In this document: in pieces, positions 24,247-64,000 of the stretch
Position numbering within the stretch: the stretch's first letter is position 1
Layout: each line of letters begins with the position of its first letter
Virus record (IMG/VR): IMGVR_UViG_3300044641_009805
Location: 214,436 to 278,435 of that record
Length of the DNA stretch: 64,000 bases
Reading direction: 5' to 3' (one strand)
Made by a program: the position numbers and the translations under genes
Notes under the pieces: model-generated
Told to the model about the DNA's origin: nothing
Seen by the model: only the letters and a program-made list of their open reading frames with translations
Databases searched by the model: none

Positions 24247-25241
24247 AAGTTTTTTCTAGCTTCACTGAAGCCTACTATGATCTGCTTCTAGACGTCTACA
24301 AGCATCCTGACTTTGTTTCTTCTCCTCGAGGGCAGAAGATCAGAGAAAAGTTGGGCGTATCATTCAGGATTTCTAATCCTCTTGATAGATTACCGTATGT
24401 AGAGCAAAGAGACTTTAGCTTATCATATTTTGTTGCAGAGTCTTTGTGGTATCTTTCTGGAAACGATTCCACTGAATGGATATCGAATTATTCTTCTTTT
24501 TGGAAGAACATTTCTGATGATGGCACTACAGCTAACAGCGCTTACGGCGCCAGGATTTTTAATCCTCATTCAAGAATTGCTGGTCAAATCGATCCTTCTT
24601 GGACACAATGGGATTACATCTTGAATGAACTGACGACAGATCCAGATTCTCGCCGAGCCGTCGTTCATATTAGATCTCCTCAGGATTCTATCCTAGCCTC
24701 AAAGGACGTTCCTTGCACTTTGTCTTTGCAGTTTTTTTTGCGTAACGATCAGGTTCACATGATAGTCTCTATGAGATCATCTGATCTCATCTTAGGAATT
24801 GCGTATGATGTTCCTGCATTCACGTTGTTTCAAGAGTTGTTGGCTAATCAATTATCGGATAGGCTGAACAGGTCTATAAGCGTTGGTGAGTATACTCACG
24901 TAAGCAATTCTTTGCATATTTATGAAAAGCATTTTGGAATGGTAGAAGAAATTCTAAAAAAACGAGAGTTTTTTAGTTTAGAAATGCCGAAGCTACCAAA
25001 GGGTAAACTACCTTTAGAATATATTTTGGAGCAAGAATCCAAGTGCAGAAATTGTCAGACTATTGATGAATTAAAACAGTTGGCTTCTAATCTCAATGCT
25101 GGTTCTGAATATTGGAATGATTGGTGCAAGATTTTAATTTCGCATAGAGCAAATAAGTTAAAAGGTGTTGATTCTGAAAACTTTAAGTTAGTCCTCTTGA
25201 AATCAACGGAATTTAACGGCTATAAATTTTTTAACAAATAA
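24243..25241 (+). CDS. Thymidylate synthase homolog of dCMP-modifying type (dCMP hydroxymethylase-like)
   Basis: SRRAV, DVPC (catalytic Cys), MRSSDLILGIAYD with Asp at the Asn177-equivalent site, SLHIYE; ThyX already present. Confidence 0.8.
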   Translation: MKVFSSFTEAYYDLLLDVYKHPDFVSSPRGQKIREKLGVSFRISNPLDRLPYVEQRDFSLSYFVAESLWYLSGNDSTEWISNYSSFWKNISDDGTTANSAYGARIFNPHSRIAGQIDPSWTQWDYILNELTTDPDSRRAVVHIRSPQDSILASKDVPCTLSLQFFLRNDQVHMIVSMRSSDLILGIAYDVPAFTLFQELLANQLSDRLNRSISVGEYTHVSNSLHIYEKHFGMVEEILKKREFFSLEMPKLPKGKLPLEYILEQESKCRNCQTIDELKQLASNLNAGSEYWNDWCKILISHRANKLKGVDSENFKLVLLKSTEFNGYKFFNK

Positions 25242-52910: not shown

Positions 52911-52940
52911 GTGCAATTCTCTCGTCGTGGATGATACCAT
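52911..52940 (+). promoter_or_regulatory. GTGNAA-N18-TANNNT promoter, leaderless
   Basis: GTGCAA-N18-TACCAT-N6-ATG(52947). Confidence 0.8.
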
Positions 52941-52946
52941 ACTGAT

Positions 52947-53195
52947 ATGAAGTTCCTCGATGCCTACATTGCAGACATTCCTATGGGTTCCTTGATGTAC
53001 CCAAGTGCGGATGCGCGTAACAATTGCAAGGGTGGAAACTACTACCTCGAGGATCTCATGCGGTTTGTTGGCGATTCAGAGATCTTTCCTGCTGTCGTCA
53101 TCCCAGGAAAGTATGAGACTTTCGTCCAGGTTCTCACACCGACCGGCATCCACACCATGAGCAAATTCTCCATGGTTTCTTACGAGAAAACATGA
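52947..53195 (+). CDS. xGDLV-family-like small protein
   Basis: PMGSLMY...VQVLTPTG. Confidence 0.7.
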   Translation: MKFLDAYIADIPMGSLMYPSADARNNCKGGNYYLEDLMRFVGDSEIFPAVVIPGKYETFVQVLTPTGIHTMSKFSMVSYEKT

Positions 53196-53404
53196 AGGTT
53201 CAAGTTGGAGATCTCGTCACCTACGAATGGGCGACCAACCTTTCATTTCATGGGCTGGTTCTCGGTGTCAAGGATTCGTCTGATTTACACGGCAAACATT
53301 CGATCCTATATTCTTTCGAACTGCTAGAAGAAAACGAAAAAAGATTTTGGTACGATGTATGGGAAGGAGTAGACGAGGGCAAGATCATAGTCCATAATCG
53401 ATAG
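53192..53404 (+). CDS. xGDLV-family small protein
   Basis: MKVQVGDLVTY; ATGA coupling. Confidence 0.75.
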   Translation: MKVQVGDLVTYEWATNLSFHGLVLGVKDSSDLHGKHSILYSFELLEENEKRFWYDVWEGVDEGKIIVHNR

Positions 53405-53408
53405 CGTC

Positions 53409-53603
53409 ATGAATTCTTTTGCGGTAGGTGATCTGGTCACACTCAACATCCACTCATCATGGATCAAGGGTGACTTGTGCCCTATTTTACTCGTCATAGG
53501 ATTCGGTAAGACTGTCAAACTCAGAAAGCCCACTTGCAAGTTGCTCTTACCAGACGGAACGGTAAAGACGTATTTTAGTCGCCACGTGAAAAAATTACTA
53601 TGA
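53409..53603 (+). CDS. xGDLV-family small protein
   Basis: FAVGDLVTL...CKLLLPDG. Confidence 0.75.
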   Translation: MNSFAVGDLVTLNIHSSWIKGDLCPILLVIGFGKTVKLRKPTCKLLLPDGTVKTYFSRHVKKLL

Positions 53604-53788
53604 AACCAGGTGATTTGGTCATAGGTCGTCAGGAGGGTAGAAAAGGAAAACCTCTCACTGGAATACTCCTATACGAATCTCCCCGAACCAACTGGTGGGG
53701 TGACCAACAACACCGATGGTGGTTCGTCCTGTGTCAGGATGGAATGATCGTGGAAGAGACCGAGAACTACATGGACGTCGTCGAATGA
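53600..53788 (+). CDS. xGDLV-family small protein
   Basis: MKPGDLVIG; ATGA coupling. Confidence 0.78.
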   Translation: MKPGDLVIGRQEGRKGKPLTGILLYESPRTNWWGDQQHRWWFVLCQDGMIVEETENYMDVVE

Positions 53789-53979
53789 AGCGATCACCCA
53801 CGACATGGAGGGAACCTCTCCTTCCCGGTGAACTCGTAAAGTTCTCTGATGAACCTCAGGTTTACGTGGTCATTCGAACCTTCTTCTCCGATCGATTCCT
53901 CGACAACATCGTAGAGGTCCTCACACCCGATGGAAAAACACACCAGTTCTACGAGGACTACATGGATCGAGTCAGGTGA
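53785..53979 (+). CDS. xGDLV-family small protein
   Basis: LLPGELVKF...VEVLTPDG; ATGA coupling. Confidence 0.75.
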   Translation: MKRSPTTWREPLLPGELVKFSDEPQVYVVIRTFFSDRFLDNIVEVLTPDGKTHQFYEDYMDRVR

Positions 53980-54065
53980 TCACGTTGTCAATCCAGTATC
54001 GATCTTCAAACATATTTATGATTGTCTGCGAATAATTTTGATTTGTTCGCACAGGAGATTTTTTT

Positions 54066-54869
54066 ATGGCCATTAAATTAACAGGATCCGGTGGGTCCAT
54101 CAAATTAACAGGTACAGGTGGAAGTCTAAAGGTTATTCCGTCAGTCGGCGGTGGAGGGACAATAGACCCAGGTTCTTTTCCCGACCTCGTCGCATGGTAT
54201 AAAGCTGGCTCGTTGGCTTTGAGCAATGGTGCAACTGTTACCAACTGGTCCGATGACTCTCCAAATAACAACGACTTGAACAGTTACGAGAGTGCTCCGA
54301 TATACAACTCATCCGACGCCTTATTGAATGGTATGCCTTCAGTGACCTACGATGGCAATGACTCAAATTATCGATCCAATCCCACAGGACTACCAGTTGG
54401 TTCTTCTGCATGCACAGCATACATTGTAGCATATTGGGATGGTGCATCGGGATGTCAGGGATTGTTCGGCTGGGGTGCAAATGCCTATACAGGAAGTAGA
54501 ATTTCTTTCGGGCAGTGCAATGGACTTTTGCAAGCAGAATCACAAGGCATGGGATCGGTCACACGTAGCATCTCAGCTAACACTCCTTTCATTTATTCTT
54601 TTCCGTATGTTGCGGGTGCAAACTATTCGGCATCCACAACATATCTAAACGGAGTTGGTCTCACAGGCGAAATACCAGGGTTCCCAGGGGTTCCAAATAT
54701 AATCAATCCCGTGTCGGAAATTGCGATTGGACGACCGCCTACGGTAGCTGTCGAACGATGGACCGGTGCTGTTGCAGAGGCTCTTATCTTCAACACGACA
54801 CACGATGCTTCTACTCGTCAAAGCATCGAAAATTATCTAGCGAACAAATATGGAATTACGCTAGCATAA
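54066..54869 (+). CDS. LamG/concanavalin-A-like lectin domain protein with Gly-rich N-terminus
   Basis: AWYKA, NWSDDS, GMPSVTYDG, WTGAVAEALIFN, IENYLANKYG; SD AGGAG. Confidence 0.8.
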   Translation: MAIKLTGSGGSIKLTGTGGSLKVIPSVGGGGTIDPGSFPDLVAWYKAGSLALSNGATVTNWSDDSPNNNDLNSYESAPIYNSSDALLNGMPSVTYDGNDSNYRSNPTGLPVGSSACTAYIVAYWDGASGCQGLFGWGANAYTGSRISFGQCNGLLQAESQGMGSVTRSISANTPFIYSFPYVAGANYSASTTYLNGVGLTGEIPGFPGVPNIINPVSEIAIGRPPTVAVERWTGAVAEALIFNTTHDASTRQSIENYLANKYGITLA

Positions 54870-54895
54870 TTTGCGTATGAATTAATTCAAATTTT

Positions 54896-54927
54896 CGACC
54901 AGGAATTAAACGCTCCCGGTCGTTTTT
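54896..54927 (+). terminator. Putative terminator after LamG gene
   Basis: CGACCAGGA...TCCCGGTCG imperfect stem followed by TTTTT. Confidence 0.5.
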
Positions 54928-54933
54928 CATCCC

Positions 54934-54963
54934 GTGAAATCCCCTCACATCCCATGATATACT
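54934..54963 (+). promoter_or_regulatory. GTGNAA-N18-TANNNT promoter, leaderless
   Basis: GTGAAA-N18-TATACT-N6-ATG(54970). Confidence 0.82.
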
Positions 54964-54969
54964 GATCCC

Positions 54970-55221
54970 ATGGACCTCAGGGTTGGCAACATGGTGACCA
55001 CACCAAGCTACGTGGATCTCTGCACCGATCCATCCCTCTATTATTCCTCCACGATCTTCAGCAGGTATCAGCTCGGAATCGTTGTGGAACTCCTGGAGAC
55101 TCCCGACGCCATCGGCCGAGAGCAGATCACCTATGCAAAGGTTCTCTCCTCCACCGGTCACATTGGTTGGTGTGTGGCCCGTTTCCTTATCCCTGCATCC
55201 CAATATCGTCGAGGATCATGA
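54970..55221 (+). CDS. xGDLV-family small protein
   Basis: LRVGNMV...AKVLSSTGHIGW. Confidence 0.78.
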   Translation: MDLRVGNMVTTPSYVDLCTDPSLYYSSTIFSRYQLGIVVELLETPDAIGREQITYAKVLSSTGHIGWCVARFLIPASQYRRGS

Positions 55222-55424
55222 AACCAGGATCTCTCATCGTAGTCCCTCCGCGTTCATACGTGAATTTCTACCCGGATCTTCGCTATGGAAACTCCACACG
55301 AATCACGGAAAACCAAGCCATGTTGGTACTTCCAGGTTATTCCGATGGTGGTTGGGTAAAGGTTCTCCTGGCGGATCAAAGAATCGGTTACATCTGTGCC
55401 ATCGGCATGAAGGAGGTTCAATAG
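55218..55424 (+). CDS. xGDLV-family small protein
   Basis: MKPGSLIVV...VKVLLADQRIGY. Confidence 0.78.
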   Translation: MKPGSLIVVPPRSYVNFYPDLRYGNSTRITENQAMLVLPGYSDGGWVKVLLADQRIGYICAIGMKEVQ

Positions 55425-55624
55425 TGAACCCACCATTCAACCCGGGTTCCATGGTGAAACTCACGAAGTACCGCACCTCACCCTACTACGATCAACCACT
55501 CCTCATCATCGATGTTGAATTCAAGTACACCATGTACTTCTGCCGGTGTCTCGTTCCAACAACAGCCATGGTTCACACCTTCGATTCCAAGGATCTCCAG
55601 GAAATTCACCCATGTATCCAGTAG
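55424..55624 (+). CDS. xGDLV-family small protein
   Basis: GTG overlapping TAG; FNPGSMVKL. Confidence 0.7.
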   Translation: MNPPFNPGSMVKLTKYRTSPYYDQPLLIIDVEFKYTMYFCRCLVPTTAMVHTFDSKDLQEIHPCIQ

Positions 55625-55821
55625 GAACCTTGATCAGGGTTTGTAACACCGGTGGTGCCATACCCTACATCGAAATCTTCAACAATCGAATCGATTCATC
55701 CCTGGTTATTCCCTATGGTTCACTCGGAATCATAACAGAACAACACTCATACCGTTCCCAGGTGGCATTTCCCAACGCCCACGGGTGGATCCCCAACGAA
55801 TTCCTTGAAATCATTCGGTGA
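55612..55821 (+). CDS. xGDLV-family small protein
   Basis: MYPVGTLIRV...AHGW. Confidence 0.75.
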   Translation: MYPVGTLIRVCNTGGAIPYIEIFNNRIDSSLVIPYGSLGIITEQHSYRSQVAFPNAHGWIPNEFLEIIR

Positions 55822-55846
55822 AAACCCACTAAAAATGTATTAGTAT
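55818..55846 (+). promoter_or_regulatory. Variant of the GTGNAA promoter
   Basis: GTGAAA-N17-TAGTAT-N8-ATG(55855). Confidence 0.6.
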
Positions 55847-55854
55847 ACAACACC

Positions 55855-56142
55855 ATGGCCATCTATCGAGTCTCATTCCTCACCGATCTCCTGGTGGAAT
55901 GTGAAAATGAAAAAGAAGCCGAGATGATCGGATTCAAACACCTCACCGATGAGGTTGATAACCGAGGATCCGAGGTTTTCTCAATCAAACTCCTAGAATC
56001 TCCGGATCAGGTTCGCAGGTGGGAAAGAGGTTCCTTACCATGGAGGGATACCCAACGAGATCTCCGCGGTGAACGTGAAAAACCTGTGGAACAAATCCTC
56101 AGAGAGGCACAAAATGGCAATCTACCAAAAACACCAGGTTGA
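55855..56142 (+). CDS. Hypothetical protein, paralog of 59600-59842
   Basis: YRVSF...ERGSLPWR. Confidence 0.78.
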   Translation: MAIYRVSFLTDLLVECENEKEAEMIGFKHLTDEVDNRGSEVFSIKLLESPDQVRRWERGSLPWRDTQRDLRGEREKPVEQILREAQNGNLPKTPG

Positions 56143-56398
56143 AACATGGATACCCCTGGATGAACACCTAAAAAATCCCGTTAATTTCCCTAGAGGAATT
56201 ACCTCAGGATTTTTGGTGGTATTTACTCCACCTCCCCAGGATGAAAGGTTGTACCCACTTCGCCCCGGAAATCCAATACTTTTCCTAGGTGAAATCCCAG
56301 GGATGAAGGGCCATGGGATCTTCGTGGGGAACGATGGATTGGTTCGATTCGGGTATCACACCCATGATTTTCGGGTTATTCCCATGGAGGAACTGTGA
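56114..56398 (+). CDS. Hypothetical protein, paralog of 59839-60117
   Basis: PLDEHLKNPVNFP.GITSGFLV, LFLGEIPGMKGHGIF. Confidence 0.8.
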   Translation: MAIYQKHQVETWIPLDEHLKNPVNFPRGITSGFLVVFTPPPQDERLYPLRPGNPILFLGEIPGMKGHGIFVGNDGLVRFGYHTHDFRVIPMEEL

Positions 56399-56631
56399 AA
56401 ATCGGTGATCTCTTTCGCAGGAATCGATACCAAACAACCGGTGTATCAATCTTCAGGGAAAACTCCACCCTGGACTTCGATTGGATCGCGTTGGTTCTCA
56501 AAATAACTCCACCGTCCTACTCCACAACCCACTACACCACCATCGAGGCCCTCGTTACACCCGATAACCTGGTGATGAGGGCACTCCTCTTGAATGATGA
56601 GATGGAAGAAATTCTCGAGGTTCTCAGGTGA
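56395..56631 (+). CDS. xGDLV-family small protein
   Basis: MKIGDLFRR; GTGA coupling. Confidence 0.75.
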   Translation: MKIGDLFRRNRYQTTGVSIFRENSTLDFDWIALVLKITPPSYSTTHYTTIEALVTPDNLVMRALLLNDEMEEILEVLR

Positions 56632-56867
56632 AAATCGGTTCTTTGATTCGAAACAAACCCACCTCTCCCGGTGAATATCAACACCAACTATTCGATAACG
56701 TTTGTGGTGATTGGTTCGGAATCGTAATCGATTTCATCCCCAAGCACCGTGGTTCCAAGTACAACCAACTCAAGGTTCTCTTCACCTCCCACGGTGGTGT
56801 GATTGGAAAATCCTGGTTGATGGATGGTGAAATCTCGGATGACATAGAGGTTCTCAGTGAAACCTGA
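56628..56867 (+). CDS. xGDLV-family small protein
   Basis: MKIGSLIRN...LKVLFTSHGG. Confidence 0.75.
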   Translation: MKIGSLIRNKPTSPGEYQHQLFDNVCGDWFGIVIDFIPKHRGSKYNQLKVLFTSHGGVIGKSWLMDGEISDDIEVLSET

Positions 56868-57063
56868 TCCACTTCCCATCGGAACACTTCTCCTACCCAA
56901 CGATTACCAGGTTCGCAACGGAAATCCAACATCAGGATTGATTCTCGAGGTTCTCATCGATGAGAGGTGGAACACGGTTAACTACCTCGTTCACCTATCC
57001 AATGGAATCACCCGTAGAATTGGTGATGATGTTATCCGCGATTTGTTCGAGGTGGTGTTGTGA
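56857..57063 (+). CDS. xGDLV-family small protein
   Basis: LPIGTLLL...SGLILEV. Confidence 0.72.
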   Translation: MKPDPLPIGTLLLPNDYQVRNGNPTSGLILEVLIDERWNTVNYLVHLSNGITRRIGDDVIRDLFEVVL

Positions 57064-57236
57064 AGAGGGGAGATCTGATACGATTTCACATCAATGGTGA
57101 GTTTCCCAACGAAACCCTCGCGGTTATCATCTCCCAGGAAACCAACGGGTGGTTCGATATCATGTGGGCCCACAACGGAACCACATCACGATTCTCTGTT
57201 GATTTCATCTCTCGGATGTTCGAGGTGGTTCATTGA
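57060..57236 (+). CDS. xGDLV-family small protein (58 aa, below ORF-track cutoff)
   Basis: MKRGDLIRF...MFEVVH; GTGA coupling. Confidence 0.72.
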   Translation: MKRGDLIRFHINGEFPNETLAVIISQETNGWFDIMWAHNGTTSRFSVDFISRMFEVVH

Positions 57237-57406
57237 GCCCCGGTGATCTCGTTATTTTCTACGAAGATCCCAACCTTGTTCTCGAGGTACACAAACACCT
57301 CAACATTGTTATCCTCTTCAACCCCAGGCTCCAAACCATGGATCGTTGGGGATACAATTGGATCAGTAAAAACTTCACCGTGGTGAAAAACCCACATTCC
57401 ACATGA
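57233..57406 (+). CDS. xGDLV-family small protein (57 aa, below cutoff)
   Basis: MSPGDLVIF; TTGA coupling. Confidence 0.7.
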   Translation: MSPGDLVIFYEDPNLVLEVHKHLNIVILFNPRLQTMDRWGYNWISKNFTVVKNPHST

Positions 57407-57412
57407 TACCAT
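57383..57412 (+). promoter_or_regulatory. GTGNAA-N18-TANNNT promoter, leaderless
   Basis: GTGAAA-N18-TACCAT-N6-ATG(57419). Confidence 0.8.
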
Positions 57413-57418
57413 ATAACC

Positions 57419-57592
57419 ATGGTTCCTGGTTCCCTTCTCATCTCAATCGAACCTCACCACCATGTTCCACCCGGTATCGCCCTTCTCCTCTCCGAATCCC
57501 CCACCGGAGCATGTGAAATCATGTGGAACAATGGAACCACCTCCATCTACTCCTACTTCTTCCTCAAAAGGAACTTCAAGGTTCTCCAATGA
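57419..57592 (+). CDS. xGDLV-family small protein (57 aa, below cutoff)
   Basis: MVPGSLLI...FKVLQ. Confidence 0.75.
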   Translation: MVPGSLLISIEPHHHVPPGIALLLSESPTGACEIMWNNGTTSIYSYFFLKRNFKVLQ

Positions 57593-57795
57593 AACCCGGT
57601 GATCTGGTTCAAACCAAATACAACATGCACTTCTTCTCCACCGCATCTCGGGTAAACGATCAACTCCCCGATGAACTACTTCACAAAGGAACCACCGGGA
57701 TCATCATCTCTCCTCCCAACGGAACCTGGATCAGGTGGATGGTTAATGGTAGGATTGGTTGGGGAAACTGGAACATGATGGAGGTTCTCCAATGA
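57589..57795 (+). CDS. xGDLV-family small protein
   Basis: MKPGDLVQT...NGRIGW. Confidence 0.8.
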   Translation: MKPGDLVQTKYNMHFFSTASRVNDQLPDELLHKGTTGIIISPPNGTWIRWMVNGRIGWGNWNMMEVLQ

Positions 57796-57980
57796 AACCC
57801 GGTGATCTTCTCTTCATCAAACCTGGTACCCAGGTTCCACCCAACGGCAGGTATTCCCGTGGAATCATTCTGGATTCTCCATCCTCCCACGGTCTCATCA
57901 CCGTTGGGTGGCACGATGGGAAGATCAACAGTGAGATCATCACCAACATCAACCAGTACTACACGGTGATTCCCCAATGA
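57792..57980 (+). CDS. xGDLV-family small protein
   Basis: MKPGDLLFI. Confidence 0.78.
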   Translation: MKPGDLLFIKPGTQVPPNGRYSRGIILDSPSSHGLITVGWHDGKINSEIITNINQYYTVIPQ

Positions 57981-58213
57981 AAAACCTCAACAAAGGTGAT
58001 CTCATAATCATCTGTGCTCCTAGCCACTCCTACCCCAACTCCTGGGTTCGAGGCCAGGATCCACACCGATACTCCGTGGATACTCCGGTGATCTACCTCT
58101 CCGAATTCAAGGAGAAGCACGGAGGTAATAACCCTCGGGTCTTCTTCAACGTTCTCACCCCGGATGGGGAACACAACATCTTCTCCGGGTACTGCAAGGA
58201 GGTTCCACAGTGA
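57977..58213 (+). CDS. xGDLV-family small protein
   Basis: LNKGDLII...FNVLTPDG. Confidence 0.78.
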   Translation: MKNLNKGDLIIICAPSHSYPNSWVRGQDPHRYSVDTPVIYLSEFKEKHGGNNPRVFFNVLTPDGEHNIFSGYCKEVPQ

Positions 58214-58302
58214 TCTTCGGTGTGTTTGGAACCCTTGGGCTCATCCTACTCGCATCGGTACTCATCACGGTGGTGGTATACGGATCCTCCAGGGATGATT
58301 AA
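58210..58302 (+). CDS. 30 aa single-TM peptide
   Basis: MIFGVFGTLGLILLASVLITVVVYGSSRDD; GTGA coupling fills the gap. Confidence 0.55.
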   Translation: MIFGVFGTLGLILLASVLITVVVYGSSRDD

Positions 58303-58304
58303 CG

Positions 58305-58493
58305 GTGAAACCCGGTTCACTCGTTGGTTGGAAATCCCGATTCCAAATGGATCTTCCCGGTGATGTTGGGATCATCCTCGAACACATCCCCTATGAATTC
58401 CGTGGAAATGATCCGTTCCCCCACTGGAAGGTATTGTTTCCAGAACGTGGAGTTCTTCACTGCCGAGAATCGGATCTCCAGGAGGTTGAGTGA
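58305..58493 (+). CDS. xGDLV-family small protein
   Basis: MKPGSLVGW...WKVLFPERG. Confidence 0.78.
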   Translation: MKPGSLVGWKSRFQMDLPGDVGIILEHIPYEFRGNDPFPHWKVLFPERGVLHCRESDLQEVE

Positions 58494-58696
58494 GAGTTGG
58501 TGATCTCGTTCTCTACTACAACTCCGATAGGATTCCCCTCCCCCTCCTCGGAATCATTCTCCAAGAAAAGTTCTTGGATCTCCAAGAACTCAACCTCATC
58601 ACGGTGGATCATCGTTTGTTCTCGGTTCTACTGAGCAACGGATCCGAGAAAATCATACCGGATTCCTACCTCAGGCACCTCAACGAAGTGGAGTGA
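58490..58696 (+). CDS. xGDLV-family small protein
   Basis: MRVGDLVLY...SVLLSNG. Confidence 0.78.
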   Translation: MRVGDLVLYYNSDRIPLPLLGIILQEKFLDLQELNLITVDHRLFSVLLSNGSEKIIPDSYLRHLNEVE

Positions 58697-58722
58697 AAAT
58701 CCCCACCTCGATAGGATAGGAT
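58693..58722 (+). promoter_or_regulatory. GTGNAA-N18-TANNNT promoter, leaderless
   Basis: GTGAAA-N18-TAGGAT-N6-ATG(58729). Confidence 0.82.
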
Positions 58723-58728
58723 AACATC

Positions 58729-59229
58729 ATGGCAACGAAGAAATCCTCCAGTTCCACCAAGAAATCCACCGAGAAAAAGAACTTCGTGTTGAAGTTCCAC
58801 ACATCCCTCGATGGAGAGAATAACTCCTGGGATTCACCTATGTTCTACAGTGAATCCGGGCAAGGTTGGGTGGCCGATATCGGAAGTGCAACTCGATATT
58901 CCGAGAGCGGTGCGGATGGGATCATCCTGGAACTTCTCAAGGTGGAAAAGATCGCATCCGAGTTGATCGATGTGAACGAGAAACCGGATAACCTCTTCTC
59001 ACTTCACACGGTGTTCCTCAATGTGAACAACATCCCGCAGATCATCAACAAGGTTCCCCAGTTCATCGGTGATACCTACCACCTCATTCCCTCCCACGAG
59101 AACTGGAGTGAGGAGGATCTGGTGGATATGTTGAAGGAGGATCGTTTCACGGTTCTATGGGATCCGGTTGGAAGTTTTGTTCCTGAGGATAACGAGAGTT
59201 GGTTGAATGGTTTGATGGGTAAATCATGA
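58729..59229 (+). CDS. Hypothetical protein
   Basis: 166 aa ORF behind promoter. Confidence 0.8.
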   Translation: MATKKSSSSTKKSTEKKNFVLKFHTSLDGENNSWDSPMFYSESGQGWVADIGSATRYSESGADGIILELLKVEKIASELIDVNEKPDNLFSLHTVFLNVNNIPQIINKVPQFIGDTYHLIPSHENWSEEDLVDMLKEDRFTVLWDPVGSFVPEDNESWLNGLMGKS

Positions 59230-59408
59230 AGAAATCAGGAATGAGGGATGAACTACTTCAGGTTTGCATGGATTTCATCCGTGAGAATGGTATCAGTTGT
59301 TCCGAGGTTATCTACCAATCGGATCGGATCATCCTAAACTCCCAGGATTTCATCAAGAGGATCTGTGATGTGGTAGGTTACTATGAAGTGGAGGAGGATG
59401 AGAAGTGA
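59226..59408 (+). CDS. Hypothetical protein
   Basis: 60 aa; ATGA coupling. Confidence 0.7.
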   Translation: MKKSGMRDELLQVCMDFIRENGISCSEVIYQSDRIILNSQDFIKRICDVVGYYEVEEDEK

Positions 59409-59590
59409 ACCTCCCTCGAATTCGAAGTGGATTTCGTTTGTTGTTGAGAAGTTCCACCGGGTTCTTCACCTCCTTCCCCAACTGGAACCTGATGGGTATC
59501 AGGGCCCGGCAGGTTGGAATATGTTTACGTGCCATTCGAAGTGGATTTTTTGATGAACCTCCGGTGAAAAACCCAACCGGTGGAGGATAG
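59405..59590 (+). CDS. Possible basic hypothetical protein
   Basis: GTGA coupling; IRSGF occurs twice. Confidence 0.45.
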   Translation: MNLPRIRSGFRLLLRSSTGFFTSFPNWNLMGIRARQVGICLRAIRSGFFDEPPVKNPTGGG

Positions 59591-59593
59591 TAT
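59564..59593 (+). promoter_or_regulatory. GTGNAA-N18-TANNNT promoter, leaderless
   Basis: GTGAAA-N18-TAGTAT-N6-ATG(59600). Confidence 0.82.
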
Positions 59594-59599
59594 TGAATC

Positions 59600-59842
59600 A
59601 TGTTGTACCGAGTAACATTTCACACCGAGATCCTTGTGGATTGTGTTGATCCTCACGAGGCCGAGAGTATCGGTTTCCGGAACCTATCCGAGGAGATTCG
59701 AGGTTCATCGGTGTACAAGGTTGAGAAGATCGATTCGGTGGATCAACTTCACCGGGAGGAACGTGGATCCTTACCATGGAGATCCACCGAGAGGCACCTT
59801 GAACCTGAACTTCGGGTAGAGGAAATCCTAGGAGGAAAGTGA
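59600..59842 (+). CDS. Hypothetical protein, paralog of 55855-56142
   Basis: YRVTF...ERGSLPWR. Confidence 0.78.
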   Translation: MLYRVTFHTEILVDCVDPHEAESIGFRNLSEEIRGSSVYKVEKIDSVDQLHREERGSLPWRSTERHLEPELRVEEILGGK

Positions 59843-60117
59843 ACATGACCTACCAACGTGAACAATTTGAAGGTTGGTTACCACTGGATGAACACCTAAA
59901 AAATCCTGTTAATTTCCCGGTTGGAATAACCTCCGGATTTCTTGTGATTTATTCTGCCCCACCTGGAAATGGGATGTGGAAAACAGGAGATCCGGTGTTA
60001 TTCCTTGGAGAAATTCCAGGTATGAAGGGCCATGGGATATTTTCCGGGATGGATGGTGTGGTTCGTTGGGGATCCCATACATTTGATTTTCGGGTGATTC
60101 CGGAGGAGGAACTATAG
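59839..60117 (+). CDS. Hypothetical protein, paralog of 56114-56398
   Basis: PLDEHLKNPVNFPVGITSGFLV, LFLGEIPGMKGHGIF. Confidence 0.8.
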   Translation: MNMTYQREQFEGWLPLDEHLKNPVNFPVGITSGFLVIYSAPPGNGMWKTGDPVLFLGEIPGMKGHGIFSGMDGVVRWGSHTFDFRVIPEEEL

Positions 60118-60119
60118 AG

Positions 60120-60500
60120 ATGGGTACAAATTATTACCTTAGAAAAGAATCACCTTCCAAATGTGTAACCTGTAAACACGATCCGGAGGAGGAGGTTCTT
60201 CACATCGGAAAATCCTCCTTCGGTTGGTGTTTCTCCCTACACATCATCCCCGAGATGGGTATCAATTCCCTGGAGGATTGGATCACCGAGTGGGGTAAAC
60301 CCAATACCAAAATCCTAAACGAATACGATGAGGAGGTTCTCCCCGAGGATATGATCAAAATCATCACCACTCGAGGCCCAGGGAGGTGGTGCCCGGAGGG
60401 AATGGAACTTCAACGCCATGCTCCATACCACAAGGAAAATCCAGGAACGGTTCGTGAGGGGCCAGGCTCCTATGATTTAATTCTCGGCGATTTTAGCTAG
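60120..60500 (+). CDS. Conserved phage hypothetical protein
   Basis: MGTNYYL...HIGKSSFGWCFSLH. Confidence 0.78.
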   Translation: MGTNYYLRKESPSKCVTCKHDPEEEVLHIGKSSFGWCFSLHIIPEMGINSLEDWITEWGKPNTKILNEYDEEVLPEDMIKIITTRGPGRWCPEGMELQRHAPYHKENPGTVREGPGSYDLILGDFS

Positions 60501-60501
60501 T

Positions 60502-61293
60502 TTAAACTTCCTGTTGGAGTTTTTTTAATTTTTTCTTTTCCCACCCTAATCTCTGCTTTTCTTTCATCATTGCCCTGAACTCAGGATCATCCCACCTTTT
60601 CTTTCTGGATTCAATAACCTTGAATCGATATTCAGGATCCTCCCACATCTTCTTGCTAGATTCACTCATCTTTTCTCTGTATTCAGGATCTTCCCATACT
60701 TTCTTCATGGTTTCAGAAATCTTTTCTTGGTATTCAGGATCTTCCTTAAATTTCTTTTGAGTTTCACGCATTTTTTCTTTGAACTCAGGATCCTCCCACA
60801 TCTTTTTTCTAGATTCACTAATTTTGGATTGATATTCAGGATCCTCCCACATCTTTTTACTATTCTCACTCATCTTTTCTCTATGCTCAGGATTCTCCCA
60901 CATTTTCTTACTTATTTCCTGAAGTTTTTTTCTTTCTTCAGGATCTTCACACCTTTTTTTATGTGATTCACTCATCTTTTCTTTATGTACATCCGCATGT
61001 TTGTAACCTGAGCTACCTTCCCCTCCAACGGTAAGATTTGCTCCACCATTTCCATGGTGAACATATGTTTGAAGTTCCTGAATGAGTTGTATCTCTTTAT
61101 CTAGAGATTCCTGTTCGTTATAGGTTTCAAACACAACTTCTCTAATGATCCCATGTTTCTTTTTAATGTTGGTGTGAAGAAGATTTCTTTCTAGATCTTT
61201 AATCCTCTTCGTTATTCCCTTCCCAACATAAAATGGTTTCCCATCATCCTTCCGATAATCAACATACACGAAGAATTTCTTCTCAGTTTCCAT
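60502..61293 (-). CDS. GIY-YIG endonuclease with NUMOD3-like repeat tail
   Basis: FVYVDY..FYVGKG...R..E..N; followed by helical repeats. Confidence 0.85.
   Translation of the reverse strand: METEKKFFVYVDYRKDDGKPFYVGKGITKRIKDLERNLLHTNIKKKHGIIREVVFETYNEQESLDKEIQLIQELQTYVHHGNGGANLTVGGEGSSGYKHADVHKEKMSESHKKRCEDPEERKKLQEISKKMWENPEHREKMSENSKKMWEDPEYQSKISESRKKMWEDPEFKEKMRETQKKFKEDPEYQEKISETMKKVWEDPEYREKMSESSKKMWEDPEYRFKVIESRKKRWDDPEFRAMMKEKQRLGWEKKKLKKLQQEV
60555..60985 (-). repeat. Eight 17 aa (51 bp) tandem repeats; coordinates approximate
   Basis: SExxKKMWEDPEYREKM consensus. Confidence 0.85.
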
Positions 61294-61298
61294 ACCAA

Positions 61299-61306
61299 TA
61301 AATATA
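61299..61306 (-). promoter_or_regulatory. TATANTTA box
   Basis: TATATTTA-N5-ATG(61293). Confidence 0.5.
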
Positions 61307-61328
61307 CTCTAAATACCTAAAAAGGTAA

Positions 61329-61346
61329 CAAAAACCATGGTTTTTG
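61329..61346. promoter_or_regulatory. 18 bp perfect palindrome between divergent promoters
   Basis: CAAAAACCATGGTTTTTG. Confidence 0.45.
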
Positions 61347-61355
61347 ATAGGTTTT

Positions 61356-61385
61356 GTGTAAATTTAAGGGATCATAGAGTAGGAT
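61356..61385 (+). promoter_or_regulatory. GTGNAA-N18-TANNNT promoter, leaderless
   Basis: GTGTAA-N18-TAGGAT-N7-ATG(61393). Confidence 0.75.
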
Positions 61386-61392
61386 AAAATTT

Positions 61393-61569
61393 ATGAAATT
61401 TAAGATTTTTGGCATGGTTCTATGGAAGGAAAAACCTGGAGTTATTTCTTCCGGTTCCTCATGGTGCCTTGTGTATGGTGGGTGTTACCTACACGTTTGT
61501 GATTCCCTCCCACAACTCCTACTGGAACTCATCACCGAGTTCAGGAGCGAAAAACACATGGTGGGGTAA
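61393..61569 (+). CDS. 58 aa hypothetical protein (preferred over the 61409 frame)
   Basis: MKFKIFGMVLWKEKPG...; starts exactly at the promoter-predicted ATG. Confidence 0.65.
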   Translation: MKFKIFGMVLWKEKPGVISSGSSWCLVYGGCYLHVCDSLPQLLLELITEFRSEKHMVG

Positions 61570-61571
61570 CC

Positions 61572-61601
61572 GTGAAATTCCCCACCGCGGGATGATATAC
61601 T
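61572..61601 (+). promoter_or_regulatory. GTGNAA-N18-TANNNT promoter, leaderless
   Basis: GTGAAA-N18-TATACT-N6-ATG(61608). Confidence 0.82.
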
Positions 61602-61607
61602 TGAAAC

Positions 61608-61826
61608 ATGCTTCCCGGTAATCTTGTCAAAAACCTGTGCTTCACCCACCTCTATTCCACGGTGAAACAGGTTCACAGAGGACTTCCGGAGGATGTGATT
61701 CCAATCGATTCTCTACTCACCATTCTCACCCCACCCAACGGAACACTGATCAAGGTACTGTACCGTGGGAAGATTGGATGGGTAAACACTAACTTCCTGG
61801 AGGCAATCTACAATGAAACCCGGTGA
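61608..61826 (+). CDS. xGDLV-family small protein
   Basis: MLPGNLVK...IKVLYRGKIGW. Confidence 0.8.
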   Translation: MLPGNLVKNLCFTHLYSTVKQVHRGLPEDVIPIDSLLTILTPPNGTLIKVLYRGKIGWVNTNFLEAIYNETR

Positions 61827-62007
61827 TTTGATTGAGTTCCGCAAATGGGGTTCCGGAACCTCCATGTGGCACACCTACATCGGAATGGTACTGGAAACTC
61901 CAATCATCTTCAACCACGAACACTGGTGTACCATTCTTCACAACGGTGAGGTTCGAAAGGAAATGGTAACACCCAACTGGTATGTTTTAAGCAATGATCC
62001 CCGGTAA
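61813..62007 (+). CDS. xGDLV-family small protein
   Basis: MKPGDLIEF. Confidence 0.78.
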   Translation: MKPGDLIEFRKWGSGTSMWHTYIGMVLETPIIFNHEHWCTILHNGEVRKEMVTPNWYVLSNDPR

Positions 62008-62212
62008 AATATACCTCTCCGATTCCTGCACCGTTTGGAACTCCCCTTCCACACAATCCCCTGAAATCATGGTGGATCACCTGGAATACAACGAAATAGT
62101 TCTTCTGCTCTCCCTCCACGGAGATGAACTCCAGGTTTTAACACCCCGAGAAAAAATAGGTTGGATTTCCCCCCGATCCGATGGAAAGGCCCGATTACGT
62201 GAGAATCGGTGA
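61994..62212 (+). CDS. xGDLV-family small protein
   Basis: MIPGKIY...LQVLTPREKIGW. Confidence 0.75.
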   Translation: MIPGKIYLSDSCTVWNSPSTQSPEIMVDHLEYNEIVLLLSLHGDELQVLTPREKIGWISPRSDGKARLRENR

Positions 62213-62414
62213 TATTGTAACCAACAATTCCCCAGGAAGTTCCTCCAAGTTATTCTCATCCCCACTCGGATCGGTTCCTCCTGGAACCAGGAAATACCAC
62301 GGGCTTCTAACCGGAATCGGTTTGGTTGTTGATGTTCATCGTTCCGATGTTAAGGTTATCTGTGGTGAAAATATTGGTTGGTGTTATGTAGGAAACGTGA
62401 AGGTGGTGGAATGA
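62199..62414 (+). CDS. xGDLV-family small protein
   Basis: RIGDIVT...VKVICGENIGW. Confidence 0.75.
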   Translation: MRIGDIVTNNSPGSSSKLFSSPLGSVPPGTRKYHGLLTGIGLVVDVHRSDVKVICGENIGWCYVGNVKVVE

Positions 62415-62620
62415 AGGATATTCAACTCGGAGATCTGGTTTTTATCATCGGTTCCCTATACATTCACCCTCAAACCCCGGTAATCATCTCCGATATTTTC
62501 CAACCTCCTTATTCCTCCACACCATGGTACGTGGTTCTCAATCCACTCACCGGTGAGAAACTGGAATATCAGGAACACAACATCTCAACCACACCACCCA
62601 TCGGAACACTTCCCAAATGA
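62411..62620 (+). CDS. xGDLV-family small protein
   Basis: IQLGDLVFI; ATGA coupling. Confidence 0.78.
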   Translation: MKDIQLGDLVFIIGSLYIHPQTPVIISDIFQPPYSSTPWYVVLNPLTGEKLEYQEHNISTTPPIGTLPK

Positions 62621-62841
62621 TCCCCGGTGATCTTCTCCGTGCCCGGAGTAAAATCAGGGTTGGATTGGTTCGGATCTACACCGATGATCAATGTGATTCA
62701 TGGGAAACACACGTGAAAAAGGGTGAAACCTTCGTTCTACTGGATGAACACCAGAACTCATGGAAACAGGATGTTTGTAAGGTTCTATTTCCCCGTGGAG
62801 TTCGTTGGGTTTACCGGCTGGATGTGGAGGTGGTGGAGTGA
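62617..62841 (+). CDS. xGDLV-family small protein
   Basis: MIPGDLLRA...CKVLFPRG. Confidence 0.78.
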   Translation: MIPGDLLRARSKIRVGLVRIYTDDQCDSWETHVKKGETFVLLDEHQNSWKQDVCKVLFPRGVRWVYRLDVEVVE

Positions 62842-63023
62842 GAAACGATGATATCCTCAGTGTGAATCAGGTGGTACCTGGATCCCTGGTTCTTCACCGT
62901 TACAACCCTGAGATCGGTGTGGTTCTCCGCGTTTCCTGGAACATGGTTGAGATTCTACTCGGAAACTCCACCGTGAGGTGGGAGATGAATGGATTCAGGA
63001 ATATCTTTAGGAATCTCCAGTGA
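62838..63023 (+). CDS. xGDLV-family small protein
   Basis: VVPGSLVLH; GTGA coupling. Confidence 0.72.
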   Translation: MRNDDILSVNQVVPGSLVLHRYNPEIGVVLRVSWNMVEILLGNSTVRWEMNGFRNIFRNLQ

Positions 63024-63211
63024 AACGAGGAACCCTGGTTAGATTCAACGTTTACCCCTATTCCTCATGGGGATTGGGGATTCTCCTCGGTGAGAAACCG
63101 TTTGTGGATAGAGAAGGTAGGAATCACCGTGGATTTTATGATGTTTTAACCCAGTGTGGGGTTAAACTCGTTTCCGATGAGTTCTTCGAGAGGTTGAGCT
63201 GGGATGTTTAA
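63020..63211 (+). CDS. xGDLV-family small protein
   Basis: MKRGTLVRF...YDVLTQCG. Confidence 0.78.
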   Translation: MKRGTLVRFNVYPYSSWGLGILLGEKPFVDREGRNHRGFYDVLTQCGVKLVSDEFFERLSWDV

Positions 63212-63410
63212 CACCGGTGATCTGGTTCTAATCACCGCGGATTTTCTGGAACCACATGAACCCCGTGTGGGGATATTCTGGAGCGATAAGGTTCCACTGG
63301 ATGAATGGGGAGATCAGGTTGCAGGTGAGTGTGATTGTATCGTTTTCTGGAACGAAGATTTCATTCCTTTCATATGGGAAAACCTAACACTCCTCTCGGA
63401 GGCACCATGA
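63204..63410 (+). CDS. xGDLV-family small protein
   Basis: MFNTGDLVLI. Confidence 0.78.
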   Translation: MFNTGDLVLITADFLEPHEPRVGIFWSDKVPLDEWGDQVAGECDCIVFWNEDFIPFIWENLTLLSEAP

Positions 63411-63655
63411 AACCCGGTGATTTGGTTGGTGTGAAGGATGGTGATAAAGGTAACACCTACTGGTTATACCATCCTGAATCCCCAATTACCATTAACCTCA
63501 TCCCCACCGATATTCGGTTTGGATTCTCGGATACCGGTTTGATATTGAAAACCCATATGAACAATGGGATGTACCCTTACGCAACCTTCCTCAAGATTCT
63601 CACCCCTCGGGGAATCGGTTGGGCAAATGAGAATTGGGTGGAGGTTCTCAAGTGA
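63407..63655 (+). CDS. xGDLV-family small protein
   Basis: MKPGDLVGV...LKILTPRGIGW. Confidence 0.8.
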   Translation: MKPGDLVGVKDGDKGNTYWLYHPESPITINLIPTDIRFGFSDTGLILKTHMNNGMYPYATFLKILTPRGIGWANENWVEVLK

Positions 63656-63918
63656 AACCCGGATCACAAGTTCGTTTAATTCCTGAGTTAGAAGGTAACG
63701 ATTGTTCTCTTCCCCTATGGGATGATCCACCTGATTTCACTTCAATCTATAGGAAGAACCACACCGGGAGGTTCCGTTACTCCGAGGTGGGAGTGATTCT
63801 TGAACAAAGATACATTCTCAATGATGTTCATGATTCTCTACCCACCAGTTTTTGGGTGAAGGTGTTGTGCCCCGGTGGGATTGGTTGGATAAAGAGATGT
63901 GATCTGGAGTTGGTGTGA
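63652..63918 (+). CDS. xGDLV-family small protein
   Basis: MKPGSQVRL...VKVLCPGGIGW. Confidence 0.78.
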   Translation: MKPGSQVRLIPELEGNDCSLPLWDDPPDFTSIYRKNHTGRFRYSEVGVILEQRYILNDVHDSLPTSFWVKVLCPGGIGWIKRCDLELV

Positions 63919-63944
63919 AAAGTTGAAACCTGGTGTGTTAGGAT
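63915..63944 (+). promoter_or_regulatory. GTGNAA-N18-TANNNT promoter, leaderless
   Basis: GTGAAA-N18-TAGGAT-N7-ATG(63952). Confidence 0.78.
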
Positions 63945-63951
63945 TGAATCT

Positions 63952-64000
63952 ATGAAACCCGGTAATCTGGTTCGAGTTACCAACACCCTAACCCCTCTCT
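63952..64000 (+). CDS. xGDLV-family protein, 3'-truncated by window edge
   Basis: MKPGNLVRV... Confidence 0.7.
   Translation, partial: MKPGNLVRVTNTLTPL

Follow-up and report, generated by a model that had tools for sequence, protein, structure and literature searches.

Selection against defence-recognition sites that is confined to one small genome segment has been described for the first-step-transfer (FST) DNA of T5 and BF23 and for the leading region of the T7-like murciaviruses, in which the segment is rich in small hypervariable early genes and the same sites are tolerated elsewhere in the genome (PMC10644984; PMC12455610). The avoided sites in those phages are ordinary R-M sites of 4-13 bp, absent in ones and twos. 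Besides, very short sequence contexts are known from phage DNA modification. GpC is the unit of recognition for post-replicative cytosine hypermodification by C5-MT/TET/glycosyltransferase clusters, whose biological purpose is admitted to be unclear (PMC8256090; 10.1101/2023.12.21.572611), and the DpdA of CAjan inserts 7-deazaguanine at two motifs, GA and GGC, showing that one modification system can act at two very short motifs of different length (PMC7544227). In T-even and RB69-type phages cytosine is completely replaced by glycosylated 5-hydroxymethyl- or 5-hydroxycytosine (PMC13326640). In vertebrates the self-complementary dinucleotide CpG sits at about 0.2 of expectation outside CpG islands, a regional contrast with a mutational cause that is tied to a cytosine mark and to gene expression.

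Here, a window of 64,000 nucleotides (positions 214,436 to 278,435 of IMG/VR record IMGVR_UViG_3300044641_009805, an uncultured 278-kb freshwater phage) was analysed after an earlier note had described a zone of 9-10 kb at its right end that avoids GC and GAC/GTC on both strands. The observation holds, and every count given for it was reproduced: 8 GC and 1 GAC/GTC in 59221-60360, 18 and 10 in 17041-17340, no GAC/GTC in 60481-61320, and, in 58729-59229, GAT for all 12 Asp codons with Ala at 5 of 167 codons. Over 54970-64000 there are 115 GC against 489 expected (o/e 0.24) and 17 GAC/GTC against 261 expected (0.065), whereas the values in 1-52900 are 1.10 and 1.04; the Poisson tail probabilities are below 1e-86. 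Gapped statistics showed that only G-C (0.21) and G-N-C (0.16) are affected, while GNNC is 0.74. GGC/GCC are no more depleted than other GC-containing triplets, so the second rule is G-W-C rather than G-N-C. No description of such a pattern was found in literature searches of limited extent.

The note had inferred selection against C preceded by G at -1 or -2, and this interpretation is partly supported: the core inference stands, with the -2 rule holding only across A/T, whereas not all of the causes offered for it do. Three conditions that could have overturned it, named beforehand, were examined and all of them fail. Firstly, the depletion survives amino-acid and codon correction. After synonymous shuffling with the zone's own codon usage, codon-junction GC is 19 against 103+-7 and junction GWC is 2 against 27 and 2 against 43, and no other junction dinucleotide comes close. 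The rule applies in all three codon phases, in non-coding pieces and in two opposite-strand genes, and alanine falls from 7.6% to 1.5%. Secondly, it is not genome-wide. Thirdly, the zone is not an assembly chimera, because it is conserved with the same flanks in several independent assemblies. Nevertheless, two points of the note need correction. The pattern is not a smooth gradient but steps gene by gene, and the zone does not end at position 64000. The window end is the contig end, and the contig start (1-5718, locus L352) is also depleted, with GC o/e 0.14 and GWC o/e 0.02. The contig end and start are collinear with relative L009, with a spacing of 663 vs 650 nt. The zone is therefore one block of about 14.8 kb, holding about 55 small co-oriented genes, mostly SH3-like paralogues, in a circular 278-kb map. 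Its features within the window, and the gene set that bears on its interpretation, are as follows.

54970..64000 (+): fully depleted block, part A, with about 34 small co-oriented genes, mostly 55-90 aa SH3-like 'MKPGDLV...' paralogues, many with overlapping stop/start codons (AF2 model pLDDT 96.5, SH3 domains as the top Foldseek hits); it continues across the contig junction into 1-5718.
52947..53979 (+): transitional genes upstream of the block; the shift to C-ending codons starts at 52947, and genes 53600-53788 and 53785-53979 are almost GC-free (0 and 1 against about 12 expected) but have normal or high GAC/GTC (10/5.7 and 6/6.0), a 'GC-only' class.
54066..54869 (+): variable-slot gene (LamG-like/virion-protein-like, 267 aa) of fully normal composition (GC 42/44, GWC 26/23.5, Ala 9.7%), an undepleted island between the GC-only genes and the block.
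54934..54972 (+): promoter-like element GTGAAAWNCC-N-(TG)nTAnnnT-N6-ATG, ending at the ATG of the first block gene, with four further copies at 57383-57421, 58693-58731, 59564-59602 and 61572-61610, each ending at the ATG of a gene that follows a gap.
60502..61293 (-): GIY-YIG homing-endonuclease-like gene on the opposite strand, which obeys the rule (0 GAC/GTC, 10 GC).
55855..56398 (+): two-gene module (95 aa + 94 aa), duplicated at 59600-60117, the second genes being 69% identical in protein; both copies are depleted.
24243..25241 (+): not part of the block; thymidylate-synthase homologue with the cytosine hydroxymethylase MilA as its closest solved relative, the core of a predicted cytosine-hypermodification set.

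Both boundaries of the block are sharp and fall at gene junctions: a 5' step at 54970 after the promoter-like element, and a 3' step between L352 position 5718 and the AAA-ATPase gene at 5764, inside a co-oriented array. A second opposite-strand gene of the block (L352 2504-2959) also obeys the rule (GC 1/14.5, GWC 0/8.9). The '-35' of the promoter-like element reads GTGAAA, which is TTGACA without its GAC. Five matches were found against 0 in 100 shuffles, all on the + strand inside the block, and the element is conserved in L009 and a further contig, L225, although its promoter function is only inferred; a generic promoter scan was not enriched (24 found against 25 expected).

The same block occurs in at least six large related contigs and many lake-metagenome fragments. 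With normal flanks it was found in IMGVR_UViG_3300022752_000015, 3300034101_006325, Ga0114969_10000001, Ga0133913_10000007 and ENA k141_1258463, and in more than 15 lake-metagenome fragments. The two constraints are separable: 19 ORFs are GC-low/GWC-normal and 13 are GC-normal/GWC-low, and in Ga0114969 the GWC depletion is complete while GC is only 0.2-0.5. The GC-only pair sits at the same place in a more distant relative (L334, 1385-1794). In addition, newcomers are exempt, namely an IS200/IS605 insert and the variable-slot genes. The counterpart of the LamG-like gene in L009 is only 27% identical, and other relatives carry different normal-composition genes in the block (L162, 606-2147; L334, 1991-2869).

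A regional mutational bias analogous to CpG decay, in which C in G(W)C context is hypermutable in the block, for example through context-specific deamination of exposed or modified DNA, and newcomers have simply not decayed yet, was considered and appears very unlikely. The GC o/e of about 0.2 resembles that of vertebrate CpG, newcomers are undepleted, GC polymorphisms are enriched in transitions (GT/AC 64 against 32 others, compared with 417:329 overall) and residual sites are the least conserved words. Nevertheless, residual GAC/GTC sites are conserved in 47-52% of pairwise comparisons at 90.5% mean identity, whereas the 25-fold hypermutability needed predicts about 1% and mutation-selection-drift with 2Ns~3 predicts about 56%. 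For GC the observed value is 67.5%, against 46% under mutation and 73% under selection. Only 1.1% of substitutions touch GWC, although 10.6% of random mutations would create one; GWC-creating changes are about 10-fold rarer than the neutral expectation. C is strongly favoured at third positions in all non-G contexts, and the block, with its sharp boundaries at gene junctions, is more conserved between relatives (90-96%) than its flank (80%). The turnover of residual sites fits weak purifying selection per site rather than hypermutation, and the block is read as being under weak but pervasive purifying selection, at the level of the nucleotide sequence, against 5'-GC-3' and 5'-GAC-3'/5'-GTC-3'. 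In comparison with vertebrate CpG, the polarity is reversed, the special region here being the depleted one.

The predicted cytosine-hypermodification set comprises the thymidylate-synthase homologue (MilA 2.7e-41, against ThyA 1e-15 and T4 gp42 5e-14) together with a GT-like gene (19504-20532), NAD epimerase/dehydratases (20529-21530, 23266-24246), dCMP deaminase (25795-26253), a PMM-like HAD (39784-40563) and an N6/N4 DNA methyltransferase (5547-6314). The window also holds dUTPase-family and sugar-nucleotide enzymes, and these, the thymidylate-synthase homologue, the dCMP deaminase and the GT-like gene are features in common with T-even and RB69-type cytosine replacement. The best reading, proposed tentatively, is that the block is most likely the immediate-early, host-takeover block of this jumbo phage, and that GC and GAC/GTC are the contexts in which its modified cytosine matters. 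Either the modified base is recognised by a host modification-dependent nuclease or glycosylase, which is considered slightly more likely, or it carries a context-specific bulky mark written by the phage itself. In this view each site would carry a small cost only in DNA that must be read intact from the incoming genome, before any phage counter-measure, repair or replication exists; the block would have been purged down to its codon junctions, non-coding spacers and alanine content, while the rest of the genome is free to keep the words. What the analysis shows is the depletion and its exact rule, its restriction to one block with sharp gene-junction boundaries, its conservation in relatives, the separability of the two rules, the exemption of recent insertions, a signature of selection rather than mutation, and the presence of the predicted modification gene set; the early timing of the block, the link to modified cytosine and the identity of the agent are inferences.

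Early expression is inferred only from gene size, co-orientation and the five promoter-like elements. The modification pathway seen is of the pre-replicative ThyA-homologue type, so it should affect every C and does not by itself explain a G(W)C context. No C5-MT/TET, DpdA or other context-specific enzyme was found in the ~96 kb of the genome that was read, a scope that leaves out about 183 kb, and no enzyme with G(W)C specificity is known to us. T4 (AF158101), which has glucosyl-hmC and is attacked by type IV enzymes, shows no such depletion in early or late regions (GC o/e 1.18, GWC 0.8 in both), indicating that cytosine replacement alone does not produce this pattern.

The variant with a phage-written mark corresponds to a possibility raised in the note, a glycosyltransferase marking C in these contexts and bulky sugars being kept out of DNA that host RNA polymerase must read first. 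As a modification-free island, the block would lack sites that are marked post-replicatively everywhere else, since it must be transcribed from fully modified parental DNA by the unaided host RNA polymerase. This is not excluded, but taken alone is rather unlikely. GpC-specific pathways exist in phages, and their authors note that the function is unexplained by restriction evasion (PMC8256090; 10.1101/2023.12.21.572611); one enzyme can serve two motifs of different length (PMC7544227), although the base (G), the enzyme family and the motifs of the CAjan system all differ and no regional motif-free zone is reported there. GT-like and sugar-nucleotide genes are present in the window, a small per-site cost and lineage-to-lineage variation are natural under this model, and it is independent of the packaging mode. 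Nevertheless, besides the lack of C5-MT, TET or DpdA genes in the 96 kb read and the ThyA-homologue route, which modifies all C, GC is not depleted or decayed elsewhere in the genome (o/e 1.10), T4 tolerates glucosyl-hmC in early genes, and there is no direct evidence that such marks slow bacterial RNA polymerase. The second word, GAC/GTC, has no counterpart in the GpC papers.

The note's other surviving possibility was first-injected DNA that escapes a host nuclease, possibly a modification-dependent one, before counter-defences are made. In its strict T5/T7-type form, in which the block enters first from a fixed genome end and the rest follows only after block-encoded inhibitors are made, it is also not excluded but unlikely. 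The block is about 5% of the genome, against about 8% for the T5 FST, its genes are hypervariable, small and co-oriented as in leading regions (PMC12455610), sites matter only in the FST/leading DNA of T5, BF23 and murciaviruses (PMC10644984; PMC12455610), and six of seven large assemblies break inside the block. However, these breaks lie at five different homologous positions and the two ends of our contig abut in a relative's map, so the map is circular with no fixed terminus visible; no evidence was found that the block lies at a physical genome end, and neither a terminal repeat nor an injection-stop region could be shown. No large non-coding stop-signal region lies at either boundary, and the first 3 kb of the co-oriented array (49908-52890) are not depleted. 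More than 100 GC sites remain and 68-site insertions of normal composition are tolerated inside the block, which argues against an all-or-none nuclease escape. The T4-like recombination/replication genes (gp32-like, RecA/UvsX-like) are of a kind typical of headful, permuted genomes. The T5 FST itself shows at most 2-fold k-mer shifts, whereas here 2- and 3-nt words are removed 4- to 50-fold over 15 kb, reshaping codon and amino-acid usage.

Avoidance at the RNA level, in which abundant early mRNAs would escape cleavage or binding by a ribonuclease or RNA-binding factor of host, toxin-antitoxin or phage origin that reads G-C and G-A/U-C, is considered very unlikely. Because {GC, GAC, GTC} is closed under reverse complement, strand symmetry does not exclude an RNA reader and the data cannot separate it from a DNA-level reader. 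The depletion is gene-wise and quantitative, and some mRNA interferases read 3-nt words; MqsR, for example, cuts at GCU. On the other hand, one or two RNases with the odd specificity G(W)C would be needed, non-coding spacers and the two antisense-oriented genes are equally depleted, and residual sense-strand GAC (9) and GTC (19) are both near zero.

A block acquired from a phage with this bias genome-wide, the third possibility in the note, finds no support and, together with classical avoidance of palindromic restriction sites and an assembly artefact, is the least likely reading. G+C (47% against 40%) and codon usage do differ from the rest of the genome, and the identity pattern with relatives is mosaic. 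Nevertheless, every large contig carrying the block has normal flanks, no donor with a genome-wide bias was seen among about 350 loci, and the same block and junctions recur in independent assemblies from different lakes. Paralogues of the same family outside the block, and in other phages (L040, L042, L062), are not depleted. A homologue of the duplicated two-gene module sits mid-contig in a 361-kb, 33% G+C phage (L008), with no GC depletion and only mild GWC depletion. Palindromic NGCN make up 36 of 114 residual sites, so they are not preferentially removed, and CCGG, GATC, CCWGG and GGATCC are enriched.

Every hand count in the earlier note was reproduced, and the scarcity of GC and GAC/GTC that it described in this zone is real. 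In 1-kb steps, GC falls from about 1.0-1.3 of expectation to 0.12-0.42 from 55 kb onward, and GAC+GTC falls from about 1.0 to 0.00-0.24. Overall, GWC observed/expected (o/e) is 0.02-0.065 and GC o/e is 0.14-0.24 inside the block, against 1.04 and 1.10 outside. Strand-symmetrised k-mer tables single out GAC/GTC (o/e 0.06; first-order Markov 0.05) and the GC dinucleotide (0.23), and every GC-containing triplet is explained by the GC deficit alone. Gapped dinucleotide statistics showed that only G followed by C at +1 (0.21) or +2 (0.16) is affected, with nothing comparable elsewhere in the window. Since GGC/GCC are the least depleted GC triplets, the −2 rule holds only across A/T, and G-N-C was rejected in favour of G-W-C plus GC.

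The depletion is not an artefact of codon or amino-acid usage. In 32 curated block genes (7.96 kb), Asp is GAT 99%, Val GTC 2% and Gly GGC 4%, and Ala makes up 1.47% of codons against 7.55% in 47 reference genes, whereas C-ending codons are otherwise strongly preferred (TTC.73, CAC.75, ATC.63, ACC.63, TCC.51). Shuffling of synonymous codons with the block's own usage still predicted 103±7 junction GC (19 observed), and 27 and 43 junction GWC (2 and 2 observed). Among all 16 junction dinucleotides GC is the outlier, with z = −12. Non-coding pieces are also depleted (GC 14 against about 55 expected, GWC 3 against about 25), and so is the opposite-strand GIY-YIG gene. In addition, A|G across codon junctions in window 54970-64000 is at 0.57 of expectation on the sense strand while its complement C|T is at 0.96, an asymmetry unlike the GC/GWC rule that suggests a separate RNA- or translation-level effect.

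The zone is a tandem array of 55-90-aa paralogues that start 'MKPGDLV', together with a few other small genes, many of which have overlapping stop/start codons. More than 50 such paralogues ('MKPGDLV...G.I.L...W..V....G') occupy window 52225-64000 and positions 1-5718 of L352, the locus at the start of the same contig. The family is very divergent, with 16% mean column identity, indicating that the bias is not inherited from recent duplication. An AlphaFold model (pLDDT 96.5) is an SH3-like barrel, while Pfam and PHROGs searches with ten block proteins returned no family. The family alignment was too divergent to serve as a locus query, and therefore the duplicated 92-aa gene and DNA motifs of the family N-terminus were used to find related loci. 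On the 5' side the composition changes gene by gene as follows (window coordinates):

49908-52890, small genes of normal composition
52947 onward, shifted codon usage
53600-53979, GC-free but GWC-normal
54066-54869, a LamG-like gene of normal composition in a variable slot
54970 onward, both words gone

The earlier note had described a gradient building up along the zone, but a smooth positional gradient was rejected, as the changes are step-like per gene. Likewise, the LamG-like gene cannot be regarded as a long-resident exception because it occupies a variable slot. Five copies of the element GTGAAAWNCC-N-(TG)nTAnnnT-N6-ATG, each ending at a start codon, were found at the following window positions:

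54934-54972
57383-57421
58693-58731
59564-59602
61572-61610

They look like sigma-70-type promoters with an extended −10 lying so close to the ATG that the mRNAs would be leaderless, and their '−35' is TTGACA without its GAC.

The window is the last 64 kb of IMGVR_UViG_3300044641_009805 (278,435 bp), and the first 5.7 kb of that contig are equally depleted and co-oriented. The contig end and start abut in the map of a relative and are collinear with it at matching spacing (663 against 650 nt). The zone is therefore one block of about 14.8 kb in a circular map, running from window 54970 to contig position 5718, where the depletion stops abruptly before a co-oriented AAA-ATPase gene. In T5, BF23 and T7-like phages, avoidance of recognition sites is confined to the DNA that enters first. 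The present block shares the presence of a motif outside and its near absence inside. Nevertheless, no long terminal repeat or large non-coding injection-stop region was seen at the inner boundary, as both boundaries fall in gaps of under 100 nt between genes, and the 40-mer at window 63940-63979, near the contig's 3' end, occurs only once in the viral collection. The strict leading-end version lacks any evidence for a terminus in these assemblies.

The same block with normal flanks occurs in several independent assemblies, and it is not a chimera. These are IMGVR_UViG_3300022752_000015, where it spans at least 16 kb; 3300034101_006325; Ga0114969_10000001, a 298-kb contig in which the whole block of about 16 kb is internal and ends at convergent 215-aa and 778-aa genes; Ga0133913_10000007; ENA k141_1258463; and more than 15 short contigs, most of which appear to come from freshwater-lake metagenomes. 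Six of seven large contigs break inside the block, at different homologous positions and without terminal overlap (window 64000 and L352 position 1 in this phage; also the contig loci L088, L244, L247 and L353). Together with the mosaic identity (blocks at 96%, 90% and 80%, or no match, next to a flank at a uniform 80%), this points, on the evidence of assemblies alone, to hypervariability rather than a fixed terminus; the block is evidently hard to assemble because of strain-level mosaicism among paralogues. Paralogues outside the block, and arrays of the same family in other large phage contigs, are not depleted. A 361-kb, 33% G+C phage carries a homologue of one block gene, with no GC deficit and only a mild GWC deficit. 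Megablast of the zone and of the DnaE region found no close relatives among GenBank phages, and the best DnaE protein hits are about 30% identical.

Two constraints can be distinguished. Pooled ORFs from 24 loci gave 198 ORFs depleted in both words (GWC 28 against 1390 expected, GC 507 against 2578), 19 GC-low/GWC-normal ORFs and 13 GC-normal/GWC-low ORFs. In Ga0114969 the GWC deficit is complete, whereas the GC deficit is only 0.2-0.5 and the preference for C at third codon positions is weak. In the second half of the block studied here this preference also fades while both deficits stay complete, so the three signatures are independent. Newcomers are exempt, as an IS200/IS605 insertion and the variable-slot genes inside the block have normal composition. 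The 298-kb relative carries several IS200/IS605- and IS607-type elements (Y1 transposase or resolvase plus TnpB; 3743-5543 and 17766-19353 of its locus L246, and 128-1219 of locus L334), one of which is the insertion in the depleted block.

A mutational origin comparable to CpG decay was evaluated with 61 pairwise alignments of block sequences at a mean identity of 90.5%. GC is the least conserved dinucleotide (67.5%, against 80-89% for the others), and GAC/GTC are among the least conserved triplets (47-52%, against about 85% for GAT, GTT, ATC and AAC). A purely mutational deficit would need decay rates of about 25x for GWC and about 5x for GC, which predict about 1% and 46% conservation, whereas mutation-selection-drift with 2Ns = ln(1/o/e), about 3.2 and 1.6, predicts about 56% and 73%, close to the observed values. 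Moreover, 10.6% of random mutations in the block would create a GWC, yet only 1.1% of substitutions touch one, a suppression of gains of about 10-fold. For GWC this share test is weakened because so few sites exist, and the conservation test is the stronger one. Although this is a rough calculation with overlapping pairs, it clearly favours a small per-site cost over hypermutability or all-or-none lethality.

Classical avoidance of palindromic restriction sites was not supported either. Palindromic NGCN make up 31% of residual GC contexts, against 25% by chance, CCGG, GATC, CCWGG and GGATCC are 2-9 times enriched, and no non-GC/GWC 4-mer deviates strongly. Per kb, CCGG (7x), CCWGG (5x), CCSGG (16x) and GGATCC (9x) are much more frequent in window 54970-64000 than in the rest of the window, partly because the family N-terminus is encoded as AAA CCC GG, and the contrast between allowed 5'-C..G-3' and forbidden 5'-G..C-3' is striking. 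A cross-strand steric clash of C5 substituents, or G-N7 proximity as at cross-linking sites, remains merely an idea, and the CC/GG enrichment argues against simple crowding. As controls, T4 has GC o/e 1.18 and GWC 0.8 in both its early and late regions, so that glycosylated cytosine alone is not supported as the cause. The T5 first-step-transfer DNA differs from the rest of T5 by at most 2-fold for any di- or trinucleotide and is not supported as a quantitative precedent.

The rest of the window is a replication and nucleotide-metabolism module containing RNR, ThyX, dTMP kinase, an adenine-type N6/N4 methyltransferase, HNH, GMP reductase, DnaE, thymidine kinase, dCMP deaminase, FEN and an HhH-GPD glycosylase, and it also carries isocitrate lyase, SOD and a lysozyme. 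tRNA and Rfam scans of the window found nothing. A thymidylate-synthase (ThyA) homologue at 24243-25241 is most similar, among solved structures, to MilA CMP 5-hydroxymethylase entries (2.7e-41, against ThyA at 1e-15 or weaker), while a separate ThyX supplies dTMP. It sits beside predicted sugar-nucleotide enzymes, including two epimerase/dehydratases (20529-21530 and 23266-24246), and a glycosyltransferase-like hit (19504-20532) that is weak (E 5e-4, below the Pfam cut-off); the dCMP deaminase (25795-26253) and a PMM-like HAD (39784-40563) belong to the same predicted set. Upstream lie gp32-like, RecA-like and DnaB genes, dUTPase-family and weak dUTPase_2 genes; one dUTPase-family gene appears to be split by an intein-containing insert (2934-4682 of L329, contig 208.7-210.5 kb). 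By analogy with the pre-replicative cytosine replacement of T-even and RB69-type phages (PMC13326640), it is likely that the virion DNA carries glycosylated 5-hydroxy(methyl)cytosine. Adjacent genes for a C5-cytosine methyltransferase and a TET/JBP-like dioxygenase, as in GpC-specific hypermodification, were not found by Pfam in window ORFs of 150 aa or more or in the pre-computed Pfam lists for contig 1-12.5 kb and 195.8-226 kb, a search that leaves out about 183 kb of the genome. Giant upstream ORFs were considered as phage RNA polymerase, but gave no PDB hit and contain no DFDGD motif.

The data require a reader of G-C and G-W-C whose effect is small per site, which matters only for this block and has acted throughout the lineage's history. 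Very short contexts are typical of enzymes that write or read modified bases, such as GpC for phage C5-MT/TET/GT systems and GA/GGC for DpdA (PMC8256090, PMC7544227). Type IV enzymes such as McrBC read R-mC. Selection confined to early-acting DNA has precedent in T5/BF23 and T7-like phages (PMC10644984, PMC12455610). The reading tentatively favoured is therefore that the block is immediate-early DNA that must work before counter-measures exist, and that G(W)C is the context in which the phage's modified cytosine is attacked or obstructive. The analysis itself establishes the depletion, its confinement to one conserved block, the two separable rules, the exemption of newcomers and a turnover that favours selection; early expression, the modification of cytosine, the substrate and product of the ThyA homologue, the roles of the glycosyltransferase-like and dUTPase-family genes, and any link between the mark and the depletion are inferences. 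These data do not distinguish a host reader from a phage-written mark, and DNA cannot be formally distinguished from RNA as the target, because the word set is its own reverse complement; strand symmetry is thus no proof of a duplex-DNA reader. The interpretation offered in the earlier note was supported in part. Its option of a block acquired from a phage with the same bias genome-wide is not supported. The palindrome-avoidance and artefact readings are not supported either.

A bolder possibility, regarded as unlikely though not excluded, is that the phage uses sequence alone to create an epigenetically distinct compartment. In this view, a mark or vulnerability attached to cytosine in G(W)C context would cover the whole chromosome except a ~15-kb immediate-early island evolutionarily scrubbed of those contexts, an inverted 'CpG-island' logic serving temporal gene control or defence evasion in a virus and strong enough to remove alanine from about 55 proteins. 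Region-limited avoidance of defence sites has been known for a few long motifs in T5- and T7-like phages, whereas a 4- to 50-fold purge of two- and three-letter words over 15 kb, visible in amino-acid composition, conserved across a lineage and separable into two rules, has not, as far as the literature searches went, been described. It implies an agent with 2-3-nt specificity, either a host enzyme or a phage-written mark, that acts only on, or only matters for, one class of phage genes. Its identification could reveal a new kind of modification-dependent defence with a very short recognition context, or give the first functional rationale for motif-specific DNA hypermodification, which the GpC-hypermodification papers state as an open question. 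The signature is also trivially computable and could be used to find early or leading blocks, and their anti-defence genes, in uncultured phage genomes.

The full-length isocitrate lyase gene (window 37212-38456) is an unusual auxiliary metabolic gene for a phage. Its product is 70-75% identical to bacterial enzymes of many phyla, and it was therefore uninformative as to the host. Large, G+C-rich (about 55%), repeat-containing 'bactofilin-like' genes lie on the opposite strand near the small-gene array, about 6 kb upstream of the block in this phage (window 46929-48938, minus strand) and immediately past its far boundary in the relative (L246 7642-9978).
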